A DNA stretch of 64,000 bases, taken from NCBI GenBank assembly GCA_026936335.1, contig JAPMXV010000030.1, positions 248,001 to 312,000 on the forward strand, written 5' to 3'. The DNA is from Mantamonas sphyraenae STR306. Lineage: Eukaryota > Protista > CRuMs. The notes beneath the pieces are model-generated. The model was given only the letters and a program-made list of their open reading frames with translations, was not told where the DNA came from and did not search any database. Made by a program: the position numbers and the translations under genes. Below, in pieces: positions 32,136-42,748 of the stretch; position 1 is the first letter of the stretch; every line of letters begins with the position of its first letter.

Positions 32136-34302
32136 ATGCAGCATCCGCCAAGCGCATCGACGGTGGGCACACCCACGGTGGGCTCGATTTCGGTGCACCA
32201 GATGGCAGAGAACGAGGCGTCGGCAGCTGTGGCGCCTGCTGCGGCGAGTGCGACGCCGCAGATGAACGTGCCCATCTTCATCCGCATGAAGAACAGGCTG
32301 GGACTGGACGGGCGAAGCAGTCAAGCGGTGGAGGCAGAGGTGAACGCAAGCGTGGCCGAGGCGTTTGCACCGGAGGGCAAGGATAGCATGGATGAGGAGA
32401 CGGTGCAGAAACGCAGGCAGCACCGAAAAGGGAGGCTGTTGACACGCCGTAAGCAGGAATTGAAACGACACAAGCGACAGGCAAGCAAGCTGCGGGTGAG
32501 CGCAACCAGGTCGGCGCGCAAACGCAAAGCTGAAGAGGCGCTGGAACGGATGGTGGACGAATACTCGGAGGGGTATGCAGACTACTTGGATGCACTGGAG
32601 GCAGGGGAGTTGGAGGTCAAGTCGCTGGACAAGGAAGAATTGGAGGAGGAGAAGGCCAAGGCGGCAGACGGGAGGGGCGGCGTGTTGCAATCCAAAACGG
32701 AGGTGTCGCCCGTGTCGACACGTTCACGACGCGTGGTACCACGTAGCCGGCGAGCAGCCACAAGCAGTAGCAGCAGTAGCAGCAGCAGCAGCGGCAACGG
32801 AGGAGGCAAGGACGGGGACGACGAGCAAGGGGAGGGCAGCGGAGAACACGACCCAGCAAACGAGGTCGCCCACGTGGGCGGCGCTCGCGTCACAGGCCTC
32901 CAGCTGGCCCTGGACTACTGGATGCAGACCAAGATGGAAGACCGCATCGGCGTCGTCAATGCGCGCAAGAAGCGCAAGAAGGTAGGTTGTACAGCAGACG
33001 GTTGTGTATCTTGCGGGGTCCAAAAGGAACTCAATGCGCGCGATCACACAGCCGCGCCCTTTTCCCCCTTTGCTCGCAAAGAAAACACACAGCCAGACCG
33101 TGTGATCCACGCCCCGCCCCTCACACAGACACTGACACGCATTACACGGATTACACGCATTACACGCACACACGCACATGCGCACACCCATCCACTTGAC
33201 GCCACACCGCAGCAATCAAGCACGACGGCCGACTTGTCACAGTCGCTGAAGCTGGACCTGCTGGACGCAGCCATCAAAAACACAGAGTTGTGTGAGGATG
33301 GAAGGTTCACAGCGGGCCGCCACCTGGTGGACCAAGTGGACGTGGGAGTGACCATGGTGCTGAACCTGTACCCGGGCGGGTTTTCCATCGACAACCAACG
33401 CATGTACTACACATACGACAGCCCCTACCGGGTGCTGCTGCAGGCCATCGACACGGGTCGACTGACGTCTGACGTGCGGGACATGCTGAAGAACACACCG
33501 TGCCTGTACCACGACGGCTGCCTCGTGGTGGACATCCACGACTACCGATACAACAACTCGCCGACAAGCGCCCCCACTGTACAGCGGGTGCTGCTGCGTC
33601 CGGACCCCACGTACGTGGCGGCGGACGTCACCGAGTGCTGGGAGGACCACAGGGACGAGCTGGGAGGCGGGTTCAACCAACAGGACATCGAACTGGAGGT
33701 GGAGAAGCGCATCCTGCTCGCCACACGCGAGGTGGACACAAACCCCAGCCAGCATGTGTTGCGTGTGGCCAATGCCCAACAGTACAACGCACTCAAGTTC
33801 AACCGAGCGTGCAAGCCGCGCGTTAAAAACCCTCGGTTCCGTCCACCATCCAGCGCAAGGTGGTGCAGATGAACAAGGAAGTGCACCACCGCGTCACATA
33901 CAACTACGTCACCAACAAGACTGCGTTTGGGCTGCTTTCCTTCCTGCGCGAGCGCAAGGAGGAAGAGGAGCGACGCAACAAGCGCCGCGAGGCCATCATG
34001 CGTCCTGCTGCAGGCGCTCCTGCAATGCCGCTGTCTGTGATTACCACATCCACACGCGCAGGCACCACCCTGTCCCAGCTGCCCAACATCATGACGCCCA
34101 ATCCGATGCAACTGGCCAAGCAATTGGGCCAGGTGGCAAGCAACCTGACGCCGCGCAAGCTCGCCTTTGGCGTACCGGGCGCCTCTGCCTCTGGCCTGAG
34201 CATCGTGGAGCGCCAAGCGCAGCAGAAGCAAATGATGCGACACACCTCTATTGCCAGTCTGGGCGACGGCATGGACCTGGAGGAGCAGAGCGAAGACGCC
34301 CT

Positions 34303-34338
<36 letters not shown>

Positions 34339-34947
34339 GAAGCAAACAACGAACCCAACACGAGCGCAAGCACAAACACAAAGCACGAGAAGCACCGTGG
34401 CGTGATGACGGGGTCAACGGAACAACAGGAGGCACAGAAGGCGAGCATTCCTGTGGAGAATGTGCCCAGCCATTGGGCGCTGCACCGTGTGCTGCGCTTC
34501 GAGTCGTTGAGCAAGCGTGGCCATCAGGTGTGCTACATGGATGTGTACCGATGGGACACGGAAACGCTGGGCATCATTCGCGTGCAGCAGCTGACCACAC
34601 GCGGCCACGCCAGCAAGAGCACCATGGAGAGTGCGCGTGACAGCACAAAGGGCATGCAGAACGCTGTCGCCGACGTGGGCTCGCGCGTCAATCTCAGCAT
34701 CCCCACAGACGCCATGTGCTTTGGGCTAGGACCCACCGGCCGCCACAAGGCCTTCATCCAGCAGTTTATCGATCTGTTTTCCCGCGAGGGCTTCATGCTT
34801 GTTGCAGACTCGCACACAGGCCTCGATACAGAGTTGCCTGTGTCCTCGTCCAACAACAGCTCCATCAGCAGCCGGCGCATGATGAAACGCATGCAGAAGC
34901 CAAGCCTCAGTGCCAAGCAGATGATGGAAGTGTTTTCTACGGAATGA
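32136..34947 (+). CDS. SPT20: SAGA subunit Spt20-like (SEP domain); intron ~32982-33212, frameshifts at ~33850 and ~34320
   Basis: VLNLYPGGFS, YHDGCLVVDIHDYR, RVLLRPDP and EVEKRILLAT. Confidence 0.75.
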
Positions 34948-34958
34948 AGAGACTCCCC

Positions 34959-34966
34959 CTCCGTTA
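34959..34966. repeat. Target-site duplication CTCCGTTA, copy at the omegaRNA end
   Basis: Identical to 41009-41016. Confidence 0.75.
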
Positions 34967-35144
34967 TTGTTGAATCCACCGTGCTGTGCACATCCGGAAC
35001 AACAACGAAATACGCAGCGTCGTGTAAACTTCGCCACTGATGAACTATCTGAGAGGCTGCACGTGAAAGTGGTCCCAGCAGATCCTCGTTCATCATCGTT
35101 GTTGGTTGCCTGATGCCACACAGCACGTGTGGAAGGTTTCACAC
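34967..35144 (-). ncRNA. Candidate Fanzor omegaRNA scaffold (guide would continue into 34966-34947)
   Basis: Lies between the nuclease stop codon and the element end. Long imperfect inverted repeat 34975-35008 / 35096-35133, with inner stems 35038-35045 / 35088-35095 and 35047-35051 / 35079-35083. Confidence 0.65.
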
Positions 35145-38100
35145 TCACTCATCCCCACCTCCACCCTCTTCAACCACCATCCCATGATCTTGTGGACCCT
35201 CGACCGCCTTCCTTCGTGACTTGAGTTTCTCCAGCACCAGCTTCTTTGCCGTTTCTTGCTTCTTCTTTTTGGGATTGCGGCTGGAGAACGACAGGGGCTC
35301 CTTGCCAAAAAGCCATAGATGCAGTTGCCTCACAAGGATCCCCTGTGCTCCTCTGACGTCCCTGTCGGAGAGGGGCGTCATTCCTCCGGCTTCGTGGGCC
35401 ATGTGATACATCAGCGTGTGCTTGTTGTGGTGGTTGCGGCTCACAGCACAATGAGGGCAAGTCACAACCCTGTCCCATCTCGAGAGACTGAACCCATGCG
35501 GGTGTGCAATGCCACCTCCACAGATGCATGTACTGGAAGTCATCCACTCTGCCACGTCGGCCCAGATCATGTGTCTTGCGAAAGCGTGATGGATGCGTGT
35601 GCTGAGGGACAAACCTCCGTAGAACTTCGACTGCGCAAGGTAGATCATGTTGTGCAGGCCAAATTCGTCCATCACGTTCCTCACGGACCTTACCGTGCGC
35701 AGAACATATCTCTCCAGCACATCACGCCCGTGTCGCCGCAACTGCCCGTACTTTTTCGGCTCGTCCTCCTTCTTCACCTTGGCAAGTCGGTGCAGATGCA
35801 TTTTTTCCCTGAGGTCCCGATGTGAAGGGAAGGGCAGTTTCCTTTGCCTCAATCTCCCCTGGTGCCAAAAGAAAACCACCAAGGTGTCACTGCCTCGGCC
35901 TATGTCGTTCACCAGAAACACTGTGTTCGCGATCAACCGTGTAGCCTCATCATGGTCTCTCACCGTAATCTGCTTCTTGAAGCGCACGTCGATGCGCCCG
36001 TTGCGCTTCGGCTTCCCCAGGTGCCGGAACCCGAGCTGCTGGCCAAGTGCGTCTTCAACCTCCTTGCCCAGCCCACACACGTGTGCCACGGTACACACAG
36101 TAACGAGCTTTTTCACCAGCTGTCGCTGTCGATCCTTGCTCCACTGGGAGTGGCTTTTGCTGCCTTGGTGTTGTGTCGCGTCTTTGTCATCACTCTCGTA
36201 TCGTCGTTCCTTGGCCGCTTCCATCGGCTCGCTGCTCTCTCCCATGTCCACAATGTCTTCCTCGCCTGCGTCATCCAGTTTGGCCCGCTTGGTGTCCTGG
36301 AGCGATGGTGGCTGCGGCTGCAGCTCGTGTTCCTCGCTCTCGTCCTCGTCTTCCTCGCGTTTCTTCTTCTTCCCCTTGCCAACGTCCTCCTTGTCCTTGT
36401 TCTTGGTCTTGGCACGCATGGCTGCAGCCGCTGCGGACACCTCTTTCTTTCTCACCTCTTTCTCAGCCCTGTCAATTGCTGCCTCCAGAGACTTCAGTGG
36501 TCGCAACATTTCACACATATCTGCACCCAATGTGCCACCTTCGACGGTGCTCGGGCGGTACACCACCAGACGAATCGGACGCTCGTGTTGGATAGTGATG
36601 CCACCTCCCCACTGCTTCAGGGTGTTGGATTGCATGGAGTCCACCAGCGTAGGCCAGAGCAGCAAAAGCGGCAACAATGCACGTGTCTCTGGGCCAATCT
36701 TCTGGTCCCTTTGGTTGTTGTTCAGTGCCGGCAGGCGCCAGACCCTGGACTGTTCAAACTTCATGACGACCATGAAGATGGCACTGTGTGTGCAGATATC
36801 CTCCATCACCACATCATCCCATTTTTCCTCTGCTGCACGCTGCTTGCTTGCTTGCAAATCAACGTTGTGATGCTTTGCCCAGCTGTTGAATAGAGGTGCC
36901 AGCCCCCCCTGCCAAAGGGTCCCGGTGATGGTGAAGGATTTCGACGTTGATGCGAAATGTCGCCCCGCCTGGGCGTAGGCACGAATCTCCTCCGGCGTCA
37001 CGTTCTCCTTTTCCGTCCTTTTCTTCTTCAGAAACTCGCGATACGTGTAGCGCTCGTCCAGGCCCTGAAGCACATCCACGTACTGGATGTAGTCCGTCTT
37101 GTAGAGAGCACGAACGTGTGCGTTCCACTCCTCCCACGTTCGCCTTGCCTCACCGCGGCGCTCTAGCTTCTTCCACTCTTTCAAACCGCACCCTGTGAAT
37201 GATACACCGGCCTTCTGCAATGCCCTCGTGGTACCCTTGATCGAGAAGCCCAGATGGGCAGAGACGGTCGCCGTTGCAACTTTCATCAGGTGCGCATGAG
37301 TGGGCTCCCCGTTGCTGTGCCGCCTGCAGTCCTCCATGACCTCGCCGAAACGTACCGCGACTTGGTGCTTGGTCATGTCAGCCCGCAGCTCACTTGTACA
37401 CCATTGAACCACAGTTGCCAGAAGGTTCCTGGTCAACGCAGTGACGCCCTCTCTCAGCCAGGATGGGCGAACGCTCTCTGCCGCTTTGCGTACAGCTTGT
37501 TCCGATGGCAGGACGCTGGTAGCACCACCTCCTGTGATGGCAGTGTTGATACCATCGACGACAACTCCCTTGACGTCGTCGAGGAACACGGCCAGATCGT
37601 CACCGAATCGCTGAAGCAGATCAGGCGGTCGCCTTGCTGGCACAGACGCCGTGTGGCTGTTTGCATGTGATCTTTCGACCTCGTGTATCTCCTTGTGCCG
37701 CAACACCGTTGTCGGATCTCTTCCCACGTGTGCATCGAGCTCAACTTTCAGCTGGGTCACCCGGTGCAGCAGCTGCTGTACCACGAGGCTGTCCTCCTCT
37801 TCGTCGCCAGTGCCATCCAAGCTCTCACTCAGCTCCATTTGCTCACCGTCATTGGTGCTGTGTGAGTCCTGCTCGTCCTCCTCCGGGTCCAACAAAACGA
37901 TGTCGTCCGCATCGCCTTCCTCCTCACGCTGTCGCGTGTCCATGTGGACTTCCATCGTTCTGAACACACGCCTATTGTCCTCGCACAAGAACGCGTGAGG
38001 CGTGATATCGTGTGCACGTACTTTACGCGCTTCACCGTTCTCCTGAACCACGCGAATGCGCACAACTTCCTTCTCTTTCACGTGCTCTATCTCGCGCTTG

Positions 38101-40184
38101 CCTGGGATCTCCATGCTGGTGTTCCACTCAGACAGTGGGGCTGTAAAGTCGTACAACACGCCACGCGAATGGAAACAAGCCGCGTCTGCGAGGTGCTGCT
38201 TGATCAGTGCGTTGTCCCTCCCAAACGTGTCCCCTCCCAGCTGCATGTACTGCTCCACCGTCCACGCACCGTGTGGCTCCACACCATTCATGTCTTGCAC
38301 CGTTTGCGCCTGCAGTAGAGCCAAATTCCGCCCTAGCTGCTTCCGTTTGCGCCCAACACACAGAAGCGCAGGTACCTGCTCCGGGTTGTCCTTGAGCGTG
38401 GCGTAGATGGATCTGCGTTCCGCGGGTTTGAACGTCGGTGCAGTCATCCCCGCATACATCCCCGTGACCACGCTGCCGTGGAAGGTCCTGCCAATGTCCC
38501 GCCGCTGCATGGTCCGCATCCAAAATTTTGTGTGTCCCACGTCCTGGTCCACAACCTGGTCCACAACCTCCACCAACATCTCGTCGGCCTCCACCTCGTC
38601 CATCCCATCCAACATCTTGTCCACCACAACCTCGCCCTCCGCTTCACCCACCTCATCCGCCTCATTCTCTTCGTTCCTGGAATCCGCTTGCACACGTGTC
38701 CGTTCGTCCGTGTCCTCCACCACAACCACAACGCCTCCCTCCTCCTCTTCCTCCTCTTCCTCCTGCGTCTCAACGGCGTCGATGTCGACGTCGGCCAGCT
38801 TTGCAAAAAGCCGTGGTTCGGTTACGTTGACCATGAAGAGATCCTGCTGGCAGCCCTTGCTGTACATCATTGTTTCGGCCTTTGCATTGGATGACACCAT
38901 GGCAATGCAATGGGTGCTGCTCTGTAGCAGCTCGTCCAAGGAGATCAGGCGCTCTTCCGCCACAACACTCGTCAAAAACTCCAATCCCAAGGCAACTGCG
39001 GCCTCTCTCGCAGCAAGCACTTTTGCTTTCTTCTTGTGCTTTGCGTTTGGGTCCTGGAGCACAGAGGCGGTGACATGAGCCGTGAGGTCAGAACAGAACT
39101 GTTTCTGCTCTCCCACACAAACGTTGGTTCCGTTGCAGCGCTCCTCCAAGGAAGAGACTGTCCGCACAAAGCAGACGGGCAGGTCCGATGCCTGCAAAAT
39201 CTCTTCCAGCTGGTCTGCAAGGACTGTGCCCGTTTCGTTGAACATGAGGGGTGTGCTCACAGGACCTGAACGATCGACATGCTGAACTGCAAACACGTTG
39301 CAGTCCACCACGATGCCGTCGCAATCACAGACCTTGCTCTTGATGGTGTCCAGGTCTGCGGCGGTGTGTCGGGGTGTGTTGAAAATTTCTCGCGCCTTGG
39401 CCAATCCGCGCCTCTTGCCTTCAGTCGGCTGTTGCTGCAACTCGCTGGCCACATTGACAATCCCATCGTACGTTGCGAGTTGTTCTTCCACCATCGTACC
39501 CAAGGCTTCGATTAGGGCGTTCTTGTTCAACTTGGAGGGCACGAGAGATGCAAAGAATTCATGGCCGGCCACTTTCCGGCTACCACTTCCGATTCCGCTG
39601 CTCGAGCTGGATGACTTGGTCGTGTCTGAAGAATTCATCGTCTCCTGTGCTCCCCAGTTTCTCTTGTATGCCACCACCACTTCCATCAACGTCTCATTCT
39701 TGTTCTGGCTCAGTAGCTGGGCAAAACCTTGCTGCGTGATTTCGTCAGCTGGCTGTTGGGCGTGGCCGTCTCCATGCACGCTCATCAGAGCTTTAATGTC
39801 CTTGTGAACAAGGGAGTCCACTTTAAGCCGTTTCTTGCTCCACCTCAGGAACGTGGTTACGGTCACGGTCTCTGTGGCCCTCTTGGCAAGAGTCTCCACG
39901 CCACCCCGCAGACTCGTCGCCGCAGCGCACTTAAGAAGAGCCACCAGGGCTTCTTTGGTCAACTCCTGCACTTGCTCTTTGCTGACATATTGTACGCCGT
40001 CGTCTTCGTCGTCGTCGTCGTCTTCGTCATTCGATCTGCCGGCTACACCAGTGGCGTACTCGACAACGGGTGGTTCAGGCGGGTCTGTCGGCGTGGTGAA
40101 GACTAGATCGATGTGTCCGAGATCTTCTTGGGCACTCCGCAGCCGAGGAACCTGCTCAACAAGCTTCTGCAACTCGTCTTCCAT
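35145..40184 (-). CDS. Giant Fanzor (eukaryotic TnpB/OMEGA RNA-guided nuclease), 1,679 aa, intronless
   Basis: RuvC-I LVNDIG (D1427), VAEWMTSSTCICG (E1546 plus Zn ligands), RVVTCPHC and RuvC-III SDRDVRGAQGI (D1609), followed by the basic tail RNPKKKK. Confidence 0.85.
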   Translation of the reverse strand: MEDELQKLVEQVPRLRSAQEDLGHIDLVFTTPTDPPEPPVVEYATGVAGRSNDEDDDDDEDDGVQYVSKEQVQELTKEALVALLKCAAATSLRGGVETLAKRATETVTVTTFLRWSKKRLKVDSLVHKDIKALMSVHGDGHAQQPADEITQQGFAQLLSQNKNETLMEVVVAYKRNWGAQETMNSSDTTKSSSSSSGIGSGSRKVAGHEFFASLVPSKLNKNALIEALGTMVEEQLATYDGIVNVASELQQQPTEGKRRGLAKAREIFNTPRHTAADLDTIKSKVCDCDGIVVDCNVFAVQHVDRSGPVSTPLMFNETGTVLADQLEEILQASDLPVCFVRTVSSLEERCNGTNVCVGEQKQFCSDLTAHVTASVLQDPNAKHKKKAKVLAAREAAVALGLEFLTSVVAEERLISLDELLQSSTHCIAMVSSNAKAETMMYSKGCQQDLFMVNVTEPRLFAKLADVDIDAVETQEEEEEEEEGGVVVVVEDTDERTRVQADSRNEENEADEVGEAEGEVVVDKMLDGMDEVEADEMLVEVVDQVVDQDVGHTKFWMRTMQRRDIGRTFHGSVVTGMYAGMTAPTFKPAERRSIYATLKDNPEQVPALLCVGRKRKQLGRNLALLQAQTVQDMNGVEPHGAWTVEQYMQLGGDTFGRDNALIKQHLADAACFHSRGVLYDFTAPLSEWNTSMEIPGKREIEHVKEKEVVRIRVVQENGEARKVRAHDITPHAFLCEDNRRVFRTMEVHMDTRQREEEGDADDIVLLDPEEDEQDSHSTNDGEQMELSESLDGTGDEEEDSLVVQQLLHRVTQLKVELDAHVGRDPTTVLRHKEIHEVERSHANSHTASVPARRPPDLLQRFGDDLAVFLDDVKGVVVDGINTAITGGGATSVLPSEQAVRKAAESVRPSWLREGVTALTRNLLATVVQWCTSELRADMTKHQVAVRFGEVMEDCRRHSNGEPTHAHLMKVATATVSAHLGFSIKGTTRALQKAGVSFTGCGLKEWKKLERRGEARRTWEEWNAHVRALYKTDYIQYVDVLQGLDERYTYREFLKKKRTEKENVTPEEIRAYAQAGRHFASTSKSFTITGTLWQGGLAPLFNSWAKHHNVDLQASKQRAAEEKWDDVVMEDICTHSAIFMVVMKFEQSRVWRLPALNNNQRDQKIGPETRALLPLLLLWPTLVDSMQSNTLKQWGGGITIQHERPIRLVVYRPSTVEGGTLGADMCEMLRPLKSLEAAIDRAEKEVRKKEVSAAAAAMRAKTKNKDKEDVGKGKKKKREEDEDESEEHELQPQPPSLQDTKRAKLDDAGEEDIVDMGESSEPMEAAKERRYESDDKDATQHQGSKSHSQWSKDRQRQLVKKLVTVCTVAHVCGLGKEVEDALGQQLGFRHLGKPKRNGRIDVRFKKQITVRDHDEATRLIANTVFLVNDIGRGSDTLVVFFWHQGRLRQRKLPFPSHRDLREKMHLHRLAKVKKEDEPKKYGQLRRHGRDVLERYVLRTVRSVRNVMDEFGLHNMIYLAQSKFYGGLSLSTRIHHAFARHMIWADVAEWMTSSTCICGGGIAHPHGFSLSRWDRVVTCPHCAVSRNHHNKHTLMYHMAHEAGGMTPLSDRDVRGAQGILVRQLHLWLFGKEPLSFSSRNPKKKKQETAKKLVLEKLKSRRKAVEGPQDHGMVVEEGGGGDE

Positions 40185-41008
40185 GTGTTTGTTTTACTTG
40201 GAGGGATGCGGGGGAAACCGGCTCCGGATACCCACGTGTTTGGCCACAAGAGAACACGGGCAGTCTTTGCATACTGAACATGGCCCATATTGGTGGACGA
40301 CCATTCATTGCTGACCACCACGTCCTGACCCCGGGACTCCCTCTTGACAGTGCTGCACGCGCCCGCCTCTTCAACGTCGCTCAACGTGACCATGGCCTCA
40401 GTCGTCGTTCCCATCGAGCAATCACTTCGTGGCGCACCTTGTTCACCTTGTCGTACACAGCGTCGACTACGATCACCTGGTCCCCCGCGGACAGAGTGCT
40501 CACAATCGTTTCCAACGTCACGCCCGGGAAGGGTCGGTGTTGGCATGTGTAGGCCCATCACGACCGCATGGACTCTCTCTTTTGCAAGCAAGCGGGTGCA
40601 AGACGCCTACGCACAGGCATTTTGCATTGAAATGTGCCGGCGCGAGATGCGCCTGTTGTTGATGTGCAGCAATTGATGCAACGCTCATCCGCGGTCTAAA
40701 TATCCCCCTGGCGCCTCATACACCAAGAGTGTGGACATGGGGAAGCGCAAAAGGGAATAAATTTGCAACTTACGCCATGATACAAGTGTCAACGGGGTTG
40801 CTGGTGCCCCTGTGACCCGCTAGAGGCTGTCCATGCCACCTATTGGCAGCGTGTCCATCGTGCACGTCACAACATCGCATCCAATGGCGAGGCATGTCAA
40901 AAGCAACACTGACATCAGCTTTCCGGTTGAAAATACGGTTTGAATGATCGCTGGCGTTGATTTGTTGGAGCGCGAGGGGCGCCATGAGTGTGCACAGTGC
41001 CCTGACAA

Positions 41009-41016
41009 CTCCGTTA
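41009..41016. repeat. Target-site duplication CTCCGTTA, copy at the 5' (left) end of the element
   Basis: Identical to 34959-34966. Confidence 0.75.
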
Positions 41017-41186
41017 AAACCCCTGGATGAGTTGGTTGTGTAGGTGCTAGAGGCAGTGCTGGTGTTGATGAACGACGGAAAAAAGAGACACAATTCCTGT
41101 ATTGGTTGCGCAGCGCATTGCAGATCCCCCTCCATCAAAACCCCCTGGATGAGTTGGTGGAGGTGCTGGAGGCAGTGCTGGTGTTG
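41009..41186. repeat. Degenerate direct duplication (~60 bp) of the eIF4E 3' end: 41009-41067 vs 41130-41186
   Basis: aaaacccctggatgagttggttgtgtaggtgctagaggcagtgctggtgttg vs aaaaccccctggatgagttggtggaggtgctggaggcagtgctggtgttg. Confidence 0.85.
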
Positions 41187-42748
41187 GAAAGGGCCGACGT
41201 GTTGCTCTCGCTCCTCTTGATGGACACAGCCTTCTCGCTGAAAGCAGAGTGGGCCCTGCATGGCTTGAAAAAGGGCGGTTTGAACATGTCTGGGGCCTTG
41301 GTGTCGGTGATGAGGAGTTCGCGCACGCGGTCGACCACTGTGGATTGCTCCTGGTTGACTCGTCCACACCACAACTGCACAATGTCGTCGTGCTGGCGCA
41401 TGCTGACGGTGAGGCCGAGGATCTCGTCCCCTTTGCCCAGATGGCCTTCAAACTGCTCGCCGATGCAGGCCAGCACGAGTTCCCTCCAAATGCGGTTGGT
41501 GAACTGCTTCTTGACGCGGAACACCCAAAAGCCGCCTTCGCAGGTGCGCGGATCTTCCCAGATGGGCTTCACCCCCTCGCGCATCATATGGTAGCTGCTC
41601 TTTGCCGTCAGCTTGTCCAGCGGAGGCAAGTTGTTGAACGTGGCCCAGAAGTCCTTCACGTTGTCAAACTGGTAGATCATGTTCAGGTTGTCCTCGTAGT
41701 CCTCGGCGGTTTTCCCGCCACCAATGTACTGTGAGCGCGGCCAGTGCGTCGGAACTGGGTGTCAGAGGGCATACGCGAGCGTGGATTGTGTGTGCGTGTC
41801 ATTTTGGAGCACAACGGGGCAGGGCAAGGTGTGTGTGTGTGCGTGTGTGTGTGCGCGCGGGGTTTCGAGAGGGGAACGGAAACGTTCGCGCGGGAAACGT
41901 ACACAATCGTGCCAGAAGCACCAAGTATGCTCGAGCTGGGGCACGTCGGGCTCCTCTTGGTCGTCGTCGTCCTGGAGCAACGAATCGTCTTGGGAACTGG
42001 CCACCACATCGTCGTCGTCGTCGTCGTCGCTGTCCTGCGTTACAAACGCCTCTTCGCTCTTTCCGGCACCGTTGATGACATCCACGCGCTTGGGCGAGAA
42101 CAGCAGCGACTCGTCTGCGTTGGCCCCAATGGGTTCCGGGTTGCGGTGTGTCTGCACGCTGGGTTTCTGCGTCTGCGTCTCTGAGCTCTCGCTGCTGTTC
42201 GACGTTTCCTCCGTCTCCTCTTGCTGCTGCTGCTGCTGCTGCTGGGCTTCCTCCTTGGCCGCAGCTGCAGCCTTTTCCTCTTCCTGCTGCTTCTTGTACT
42301 CGCGCCACGAACCCGGCCCACTGCTCTTGGTGCTCTGCTGCGTCGTGGTCTGCTCTTCCGTCCGGCTCGAGTTGCTACTGTTGCTGTTCGACCCTTGGTA
42401 GCCAGAATTCGACCCGCCGTTGCCGCGACCTCCGCCGCGACCTCCACCACCACGTCCGCCTCCACGGCCGCCGCTGTAGTTGCCACGTCCACCCGACTGC
42501 GACCGCGGTTGATATCCGCCGCGTCCTGCGCCGCCGCCGCCGCCGCTGCCGCCGCTGCTGCTGCGCCGGTTCCCGCTTCCACCATTCCCGTCCTGCGAAC
42601 GAGTGCGCGTTGTCCGCTGCTGGCCGCCTCCGCTGCCTCCACTGCCTCCGCCTCCGCTCCCTCGTCGCACCCCTCCGCCACGGCCGTTTCCGCCGCCCGA
42701 TGTGTTGCTGTTTGTGCCACGGTTGTGGTAGGTTCGTCCAGATGACAT
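41135..42748 (-). CDS. Cap-binding protein eIF4E (class III/eIF4E3-like) with RGG/Q-rich N-terminal extension; intron ~41730-41901
   Basis: LEHTWCFWHD, DFWATFNNLP, SYHMMREGVKPIWED..GGFW and WRELVLACIGEQF. Confidence 0.88.

Follow-up and report, generated by a model that had tools for sequence, protein, structure and literature searches.

The stretch of DNA analysed here, 64,000 nucleotides of the Mantamonas sphyraenae STR306 genome (contig JAPMXV010000030.1, positions 248,001 to 312,000; hereafter the window), carries a 6,042-bp mobile element at positions 34967..41008 on the minus strand, inserted where the 3' end of the adjacent eIF4E gene (Pfam IF4E, E 3e-35) is present as a short second copy. 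The element, which belongs to the family that we call A1, has no transposase, and its only open reading frame (ORF) is an intact one of 1,679 amino acids (aa) at 35145..40184 (minus strand). Throughout, the end upstream of this ORF (41008) is the left end (LE) and the end downstream of it (34967) is the right end (RE). We consider it likely that the element belongs, in a non-autonomous form, to a Tc1/IS630-type (DDE_3) group with a giant Fanzor/TnpB-like cargo, and that the copy in the window is the product of an aberrant insertion.

The sequence CTCCGTTA stands at 34959..34966 on the RE side and again at 41009..41016 on the LE side, each copy directly abutting the insert (plus strand; TAACGGAG in the orientation of the ORF), and its counterpart in the uninterrupted paralogue, at the 3' end of the eIF4E gene, is CTCCATCA at 41130..41137. 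When the flanks were joined in three ways and each junction was aligned to the intact paralogue at about 41113-41190, the version with one copy of CTCCGTTA scored 101 with no gap at the junction, the version keeping both copies scored 93 and required a 7-nt gap, and the version keeping neither scored 82. As the single-copy junction fits the paralogue best, the 8 bp are a true target-site duplication (TSD) of this insertion, just as the first-pass annotation of the window had it, and the paralogue shows the single pre-insertion copy. The first two bases of the RE-side copy, TA, are the canonical target dinucleotide; bases 3-8 of the LE-side copy stand in place of six nucleotides that are missing from the LE. 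At the same locus, a 397-aa ORF with no Pfam match (33754-34947, plus strand) ends 19 bp before the element, with the eIF4E duplicate that served as the target beginning directly after its stop codon, and an Rfam search of the window returned no matches.

The missing nucleotides came to light through other copies. A search of the same 25-Mb genome recovered the C45 copy, which is 98.5% identical to the window element and also has an intact ORF, and the C33 copy (97.2%), the ORF of which is broken by stop codons and frame breaks and which carries a 132-bp insertion in its leader, about 180 bp from the LE (L003, C33:142598-142729); two further copies at 72-76% identity, on C43 and C18, form subfamily A2. 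The window, C45 and C33 copies sit at different loci with unrelated flanks, and all family A copies that we found start at the identical RE base. The LEs of the C45 and C33 copies run 6 bp further than that of the window element (TTGTCG in the orientation of the ORF), past its right boundary, and neither copy has an 8-bp repeat. The first-pass boundaries are thus supported by these copies at both the RE and the LE, save that the family continues for 6 bp beyond the right one, and the further copies with different 8-bp TSDs that had been anticipated proved to lack an 8-bp TSD altogether. Shared sequence past a boundary and copies lacking the TSD were two of the outcomes that the first-pass annotation had itself named as refuting its reading.

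Indeed, the absence of TTGTCG from the LE explains both the 8-bp TSD (2+6) and the odd appearance of the ends. The RE carries a complete terminal inverted repeat (TIR) of 26 bp, TTGT-N13-CTGTGCACA, at 34967..34992, whilst at the LE, at 40989..41008, 20 of the 26 bp are present and the outer TTGTCG is gone. The ends had been described as sharing TTGT and CTGTGCACA at different offsets, which is correct for this copy (13 versus 7 nt); with the 6 bp restored, the LE has the same 13 nt between the two motifs as the RE, and the family A1 TIR is an imperfect one of 26 bp with 17/26 matching positions (25/26 in subfamily A2). What had looked like atypical ends of no recognisable superfamily are those of a full-length family with 26-bp imperfect TIRs, less the outer 6 bp of one of them. 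The TIR begins with TTGT and holds a conserved inner palindrome, TGTGCACA, in both ends. As for the age of the insertion, which had been thought recent on account of the perfect TSD and the intact ORF, the ORF is intact, and recency can be stated in relative terms: the synonymous divergence (dS) between the window element and its closest copy is 0.03.

Both junctions could be read for 26 insertions of related elements; this count leaves aside the left junction at C33:104812, the right flanks of family C1 at C68:288661-296393 and from C29:70989 onward, elements of a second transposase group, and other giant Fanzor families. A matched 2-bp TSD was present at 17 of them (TA at 10, TG at 6 and TC at 1), and the base following the RE was T in 25/26. 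Flanking dinucleotides were mismatched in four insertions, among them the C45 and C33 siblings of the window element, and one case in family C2 (L035) was ambiguous and was kept out of the class counts, since its left end allows two readings, a truncation of 11 nt and an internal deletion of 6 nt. Normally, then, elements of this group insert at a T-purine dinucleotide, duplicate 2 bp and are bounded by 26-bp imperfect TIRs. Exchange of flanks between the C45 and C33 copies was considered as a source of their mismatched dinucleotides and gave a partial fit, accounting for TG/TA and not for GA/TG.

Long TSDs, of 8-10 bp, occurred in the four remaining insertions, each of which lacks the outer 5-8 nt of its LE. 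The window element (family A1) has lost 6 (or 5) nt and has a TSD of 8 (or 7) bp; a family B1 element on C34 has lost 6 (or 5) nt, with a TSD of 9 (or 8) bp; a family B2 element on C52 has lost 6 to 8 nt, with a TSD of 8 to 10 bp; and an internally deleted mini-element of 36 bp on C44 has lost 8 nt, with a TSD of 10 bp. The alternative values stem from microhomology of 1-2 nt at the truncated LE junction, which is found in three of the four cases and is absent from the C44 mini-element. In three of the four, the length of the TSD equals the number of LE nucleotides lost plus 2, and in the fourth plus 3. The RE is intact and followed by T in all four (TA, TA, TG and TC). These junctions contain the canonical 2-bp TSD, and target sequence from past the dinucleotide on the other side takes the place of the LE tip, nucleotide for nucleotide. 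The mini-element itself (G000:C44:38498-38553) is made up solely of family B end sequence, the inner LE being joined to the RE at the TGTGCACA palindrome common to both ends, and it lies between the two copies of a perfect 10-bp TSD. Its appearance is that of an abortive gap-repair product, in line with cut-and-paste excision.

The end signature links the window element to a wider group. The pattern TTGT-N13-CTGTGCACA has 39 matches in the genome versus 3 for the reversed control, and, bar two single sites, the matches lie at the ends of four families (A-D) comprising about 25 related elements; the LE of the C45 copy is in register with the pattern and that of the window copy gives no match. 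Protein searches with the ORF delivered family B (about ten copies of 5.45-5.6 kb) and family C (about ten copies), both with a giant ORF. Family D, of about 5.4 kb, shares the end signature, has TA as its TSD and shows no long ORF within the 1.5 kb adjoining the RE: its members L036, L037 and L039 lie at C15:264235-269605, C33:161432-166822 and C68:269001-274369, and L038 is a 172-bp fragment with the RE only.

Family C1 supplies the enzymatic context. The 2.6 kb upstream of its giant Fanzor-like ORF encode an intact DDE_3 transposase (E 2.7e-27) with a weak match to HTH_Tnp_Tc3_2, a Tc3-type helix-turn-helix (E 0.0022, under the Pfam cut-off), and eight copies of this transposase, at least 99% identical, have open reading frames. 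Next to other Fanzor families lies a second group of transposases, at 50% identity, and the genome holds 19 DDE_3 (Tc1/IS630) transposase loci in all. Families A-D and the C1 DDE_3 element have a terminal inverted repeat signature in common, about 14 of the 26 TIR positions being common to families A and C. The leader upstream of the ORF in the window element (40185..40988, minus strand) shows no transposase remnant in its 824 bp, and the search for an autonomous partner with the same termini, as the first-pass annotation had envisaged, found none with termini identical to those of family A. Judging from these shared ends, we infer that family A is most likely mobilised in trans by a C1-type transposase.

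The cargo is under purifying selection along its whole length (ratio of non-synonymous to synonymous substitution, dN/dS, of 0.29-0.39, and of 0.16-0.29 in the C-terminal part). At aa 1412-1623 (35316..35951, minus strand) it has a RuvC-like region with a predicted RNase H fold and a zinc ribbon, in which three families, at 17-27% identity to one another, all retain D1427, E1546, the CxC..CxxC cysteines (C1553/C1555/C1576/C1579) and D1609. The split D-E-D triad, with a zinc ribbon (TNB) between motifs II and III, has the order seen in TnpB. The Pfam model PF07282 (Cas12f1-like TNB) is hit in 8/8 members, each time under the cut-off (best E 0.0047, 17.5 versus 26.3 bits), and in the Atlas the feature clusters closest to the protein are those of giant-virus TNB/DUF8286 proteins (scores 0.87-0.89). 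In structural comparisons the predicted RNase H-like region matches CasPhi (Z 7.7, 147 aligned residues, root-mean-square deviation 4.2) and Cas12f (Z 6.3), with ASKHA ATPases of similar Z interleaved among these matches, in a model with a mean predicted local distance difference test score (pLDDT) of 46. Across the genome, we counted 39 Cas12f1-like TNB matches, 29 of them over the Pfam cut-off, mostly in frames of 1,500-1,980 aa and in four of 633-849 aa; together with families A-C, this amounts to more than 60 Fanzor-like genes in 25 Mb.

Further upstream in the protein, aa 231-695 (38100..39494, minus strand) are predicted to adopt a FEN1/Exo1/T5-exonuclease-like fold split by an acidic insert, with Z of 6-7.7 against Exo1, T5 exonuclease, GEN1 and FEN1, and aa 68-124 (39813..39983, minus strand) a SAP-like helix pair that matches SAP domains. 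No acidic residue of the FEN1-like fold is invariant across families A-C, so that it may be catalytically inactive, or the alignment may be unreliable at 14-21% identity. A word search with the N-terminal 1,300 aa found no homologues, and an NCBIfam search of the ORF found nothing. The ORF probably encodes a protein of Fanzor/TnpB-like type, very divergent, to which SAP-like and FEN1-like folds are added at the N-terminus; the fold assignments fall short of proof. In Fanzor/TnpB elements, the guide-RNA scaffold would lie between the stop codon and the RE-type terminal repeat, and in the window element the corresponding non-coding stretch, placed by position only, is 34993..35144 (minus strand). 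Between subfamilies A1 and A2 (window 35145-37500 against L017), dS is 0.21 in the C-terminal 340 codons and 1.33 in the N-terminal 880, a contrast that suggests either recombination between subfamilies or an extra constraint at the 3' end, such as an overlapping RNA.

We posit that the window insertion arose as follows. A transposase from sister family C1, with its matching end signature, would have been supplied in trans and would have joined the RE normally at the T-purine dinucleotide TA, and strand transfer at the LE would have failed. This would leave a gap from the target 3' end to the recessed 5' end of the non-transferred LE strand, which would be filled using the still-intact target strand, and not the transposon strand, as template, and then ligated. 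The outer 6 nt of the LE would in this way give place to the six bases of the target next to TA, and the duplication would come to 2+6 = 8 bp.

Several observations weigh against this account of the element, its insertion and its cargo. Among the 17 matched TSDs, seven differ from TA, an uncommon feature in Tc1/mariner/IS630; the full-length C45 and C33 siblings have mismatched dinucleotides (GA/TG and TG/TA); and one of the four long TSDs misses the +2 relation by a single nucleotide. The proposed mobilisation of family A by C1 has for its basis the roughly 14 shared TIR positions, and the intervening positions differ between the two families. With regard to the cargo, there is no significant sequence or profile match to TnpB, Fanzor or Cas12, the Pfam TNB hit being sub-threshold; a profile of aa 880-1679 drew a blank against the PDB and retrieved one 207-aa match (E 1.5e-4) from 1.84 billion representatives; and both AlphaFold models are poor (pLDDT 46 and 49), with Foldseek returning nothing at E 0.001 or better for either.

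How else could such an insertion have come about? That the element belongs to a DDE superfamily with 8-bp TSDs (hAT, P, Merlin or another) and unconventional ends, as the first reading of the window suggested, is a view now largely refuted, to which we attach next to no probability. The perfect 8-bp TSD of the window copy speaks for it, as does the frequent tie of Fanzors elsewhere to hAT ends (PMC10530073); however, the two sibling copies lack such a TSD, the prevailing duplication in related insertions is 2 bp, the TIRs are regular once the missing 6 bp are restored, and the only transposase found with the end signature is DDE_3, with 19 such loci in the genome. The hAT dimerisation domain (PF05699) was not detected in the genome, a weak negative given that control genomes also gave no signal. 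What survives of the suggestion is the staggered insertion of a DDE-type mobile element; the 8 bp are not a family trait. A different source of long duplications would be capture of an excised linear element by host end-joining at a staggered break, made for example by the Fanzor, with the TSD equal to the length of the overhang. TnpB/Cas12-type nucleases leave 5' overhangs of several nucleotides, in keeping with TSDs of 8-10 bp, and there is microhomology at all truncated junctions but that of C44. We nonetheless think this unlikely: the intact RE joined at T in 4/4 argues for a junction made by a transposase on that side, a TSD equal to the LE loss plus 2 is not expected from random capture, and the target is unlike the RE flanks of other A1 copies, so the insertion was not guide-directed. 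On that same dissimilarity, guide-directed homing was rejected for the window insertion in general.

One-ended replicative transposition from the 3' end, of the rolling-circle or Helitron2-like type, would resemble our data in that long TSDs are confined to 5'-truncated copies, as in the Chlamydomonas CRe elements (PMC3627910, section 8). It is very improbable here, however, since the elements are bounded by inverted repeats, a co-varying 2-bp TSD flanks the copies of full length, the truncations are only 5-8 nt and the sister family encodes a DDE_3 transposase; a search of the genome for the Helitron-like Rep domain (PF14214) was also negative, again weakly so, as control genomes gave no signal. 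We give only slightly more room to the giant ORF being itself the transposase, its RuvC and FEN-like domains cleaving and joining, such that families A and B would be autonomous. It is the sole ORF in both families, selection acts on its whole length, several copies are intact, and no transposase with exactly the same termini was found elsewhere; against this, family C1 has an ORF of this kind and, next to it, a DDE_3 transposase encoded separately, TIRs combined with a 2-bp TSD at T-purine belong to the chemistry of Tc1/IS630, and the N-terminal 1,300 aa contain no invariant acidic residue. To our knowledge, no TnpB or Fanzor carries out strand transfer. TATE/VIPER elements, considered because of the GC content and the intronless genes, were ruled out: they belong to the tyrosine-recombinase retroelements (PMC6681497), and Spt20 and ERG24-type genes are present in the window. 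Perhaps, lastly, the n+2 junctions (4/26, always at the LE) reflect a defined alternative integration pathway, in which the transposase transfers the guide-RNA-proximal end and the FEN1-like/RuvC nuclease processes the other. This is an unlikely variant; if true, the giant Fanzor fusion would act directly in integration and, together with the relaxed T-purine target, would mark a mechanistically distinct branch of Tc1/IS630. The reading that we prefer remains a Tc1/IS630-type element with a failed LE transfer.

Much of this arrangement has precedents. Fanzor1 elements with or without a Mariner/Tc1 transposase share TIRs and TA (2-bp) TSDs (Bao & Jurka 2013, PMC3627910, section 7), PGv-1 and PUl-1 having the transposase and PUl-4 and SPu-1 the Fanzor only (PMC3627910); Fanzors are associated with autonomous Mariner/Tc1 elements (PMC10530073), and Fanzor-only non-autonomous elements have TIRs and short TSDs (PMC10711439). 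The Mantamonas group resembles these in its paired autonomous and transposase-less forms with related TIRs and a 2-bp TSD, and in the downstream position of the Fanzor-like ORF, with its 3' end near one TIR, the window element being a nuclease-only form. It differs in the size of the ORF (about 1,680 aa versus about 600-900), in the predicted SAP-like and FEN1-like folds without detectable sequence relatives, in a T-purine TSD (TA or TG) that is not strictly TA, and in a TIR that starts with TTGT and holds the inner palindrome. With IS630/Tc1/mariner elements (DDE_3, PF13358), it shares the sister-family DDE_3, the weak Tc3-type helix-turn-helix, short TIRs and the 2-bp TSD, and the internally deleted mini-element suggests cut-and-paste; unlike them, the window element has no transposase and uses targets other than TA in 7/17 matched TSDs. 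The likeness to the Chlamydomonas elements CRe-1, CRe-2 and CRe-3 (Fanzor1), for which one-ended transposition was proposed because 5'-truncated copies have variable TSDs and full-length copies none (PMC3627910, section 8), lies in long variable TSDs (7-19 bp there, 8-10 bp here) restricted to copies truncated upstream of the ORF. There, however, the ends are of Helitron2 type, full-length copies have no TSD and truncations are deep, whereas here there are TIRs, a canonical 2-bp TSD, losses of 5-8 nt and a fixed length relation. The resemblance to hAT, P and Merlin is limited to the 8-bp duplication of the window copy; the family TSD is 2 bp, the termini differ and no such transposase was detected in the genome. 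What differs from published systems is the length and domain composition of the nuclease, the use of both TA and TG as targets and the regular n+2 junctions, most else having been described already.

To conclude, the window does not harbour a new superfamily with 8-bp TSDs, and a false lead is thereby removed. In this 25-Mb, intron-poor genome, elements with such ends number at least 25, alongside 19 Tc1/IS630 transposase loci and dozens of giant genes of Fanzor-like type, and the element group is abundant there and probably recently active. Of general interest are a Tc1-like family in which TA and TG targets are used about equally, and a junction arithmetic (2 plus the lost end nucleotides) that would record the outcome when one strand transfer fails. 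The cargo is the more unusual object: going by its motifs and predicted folds, a selection-constrained, probably Fanzor-like protein of 1,679 aa with almost no relatives in the databases.

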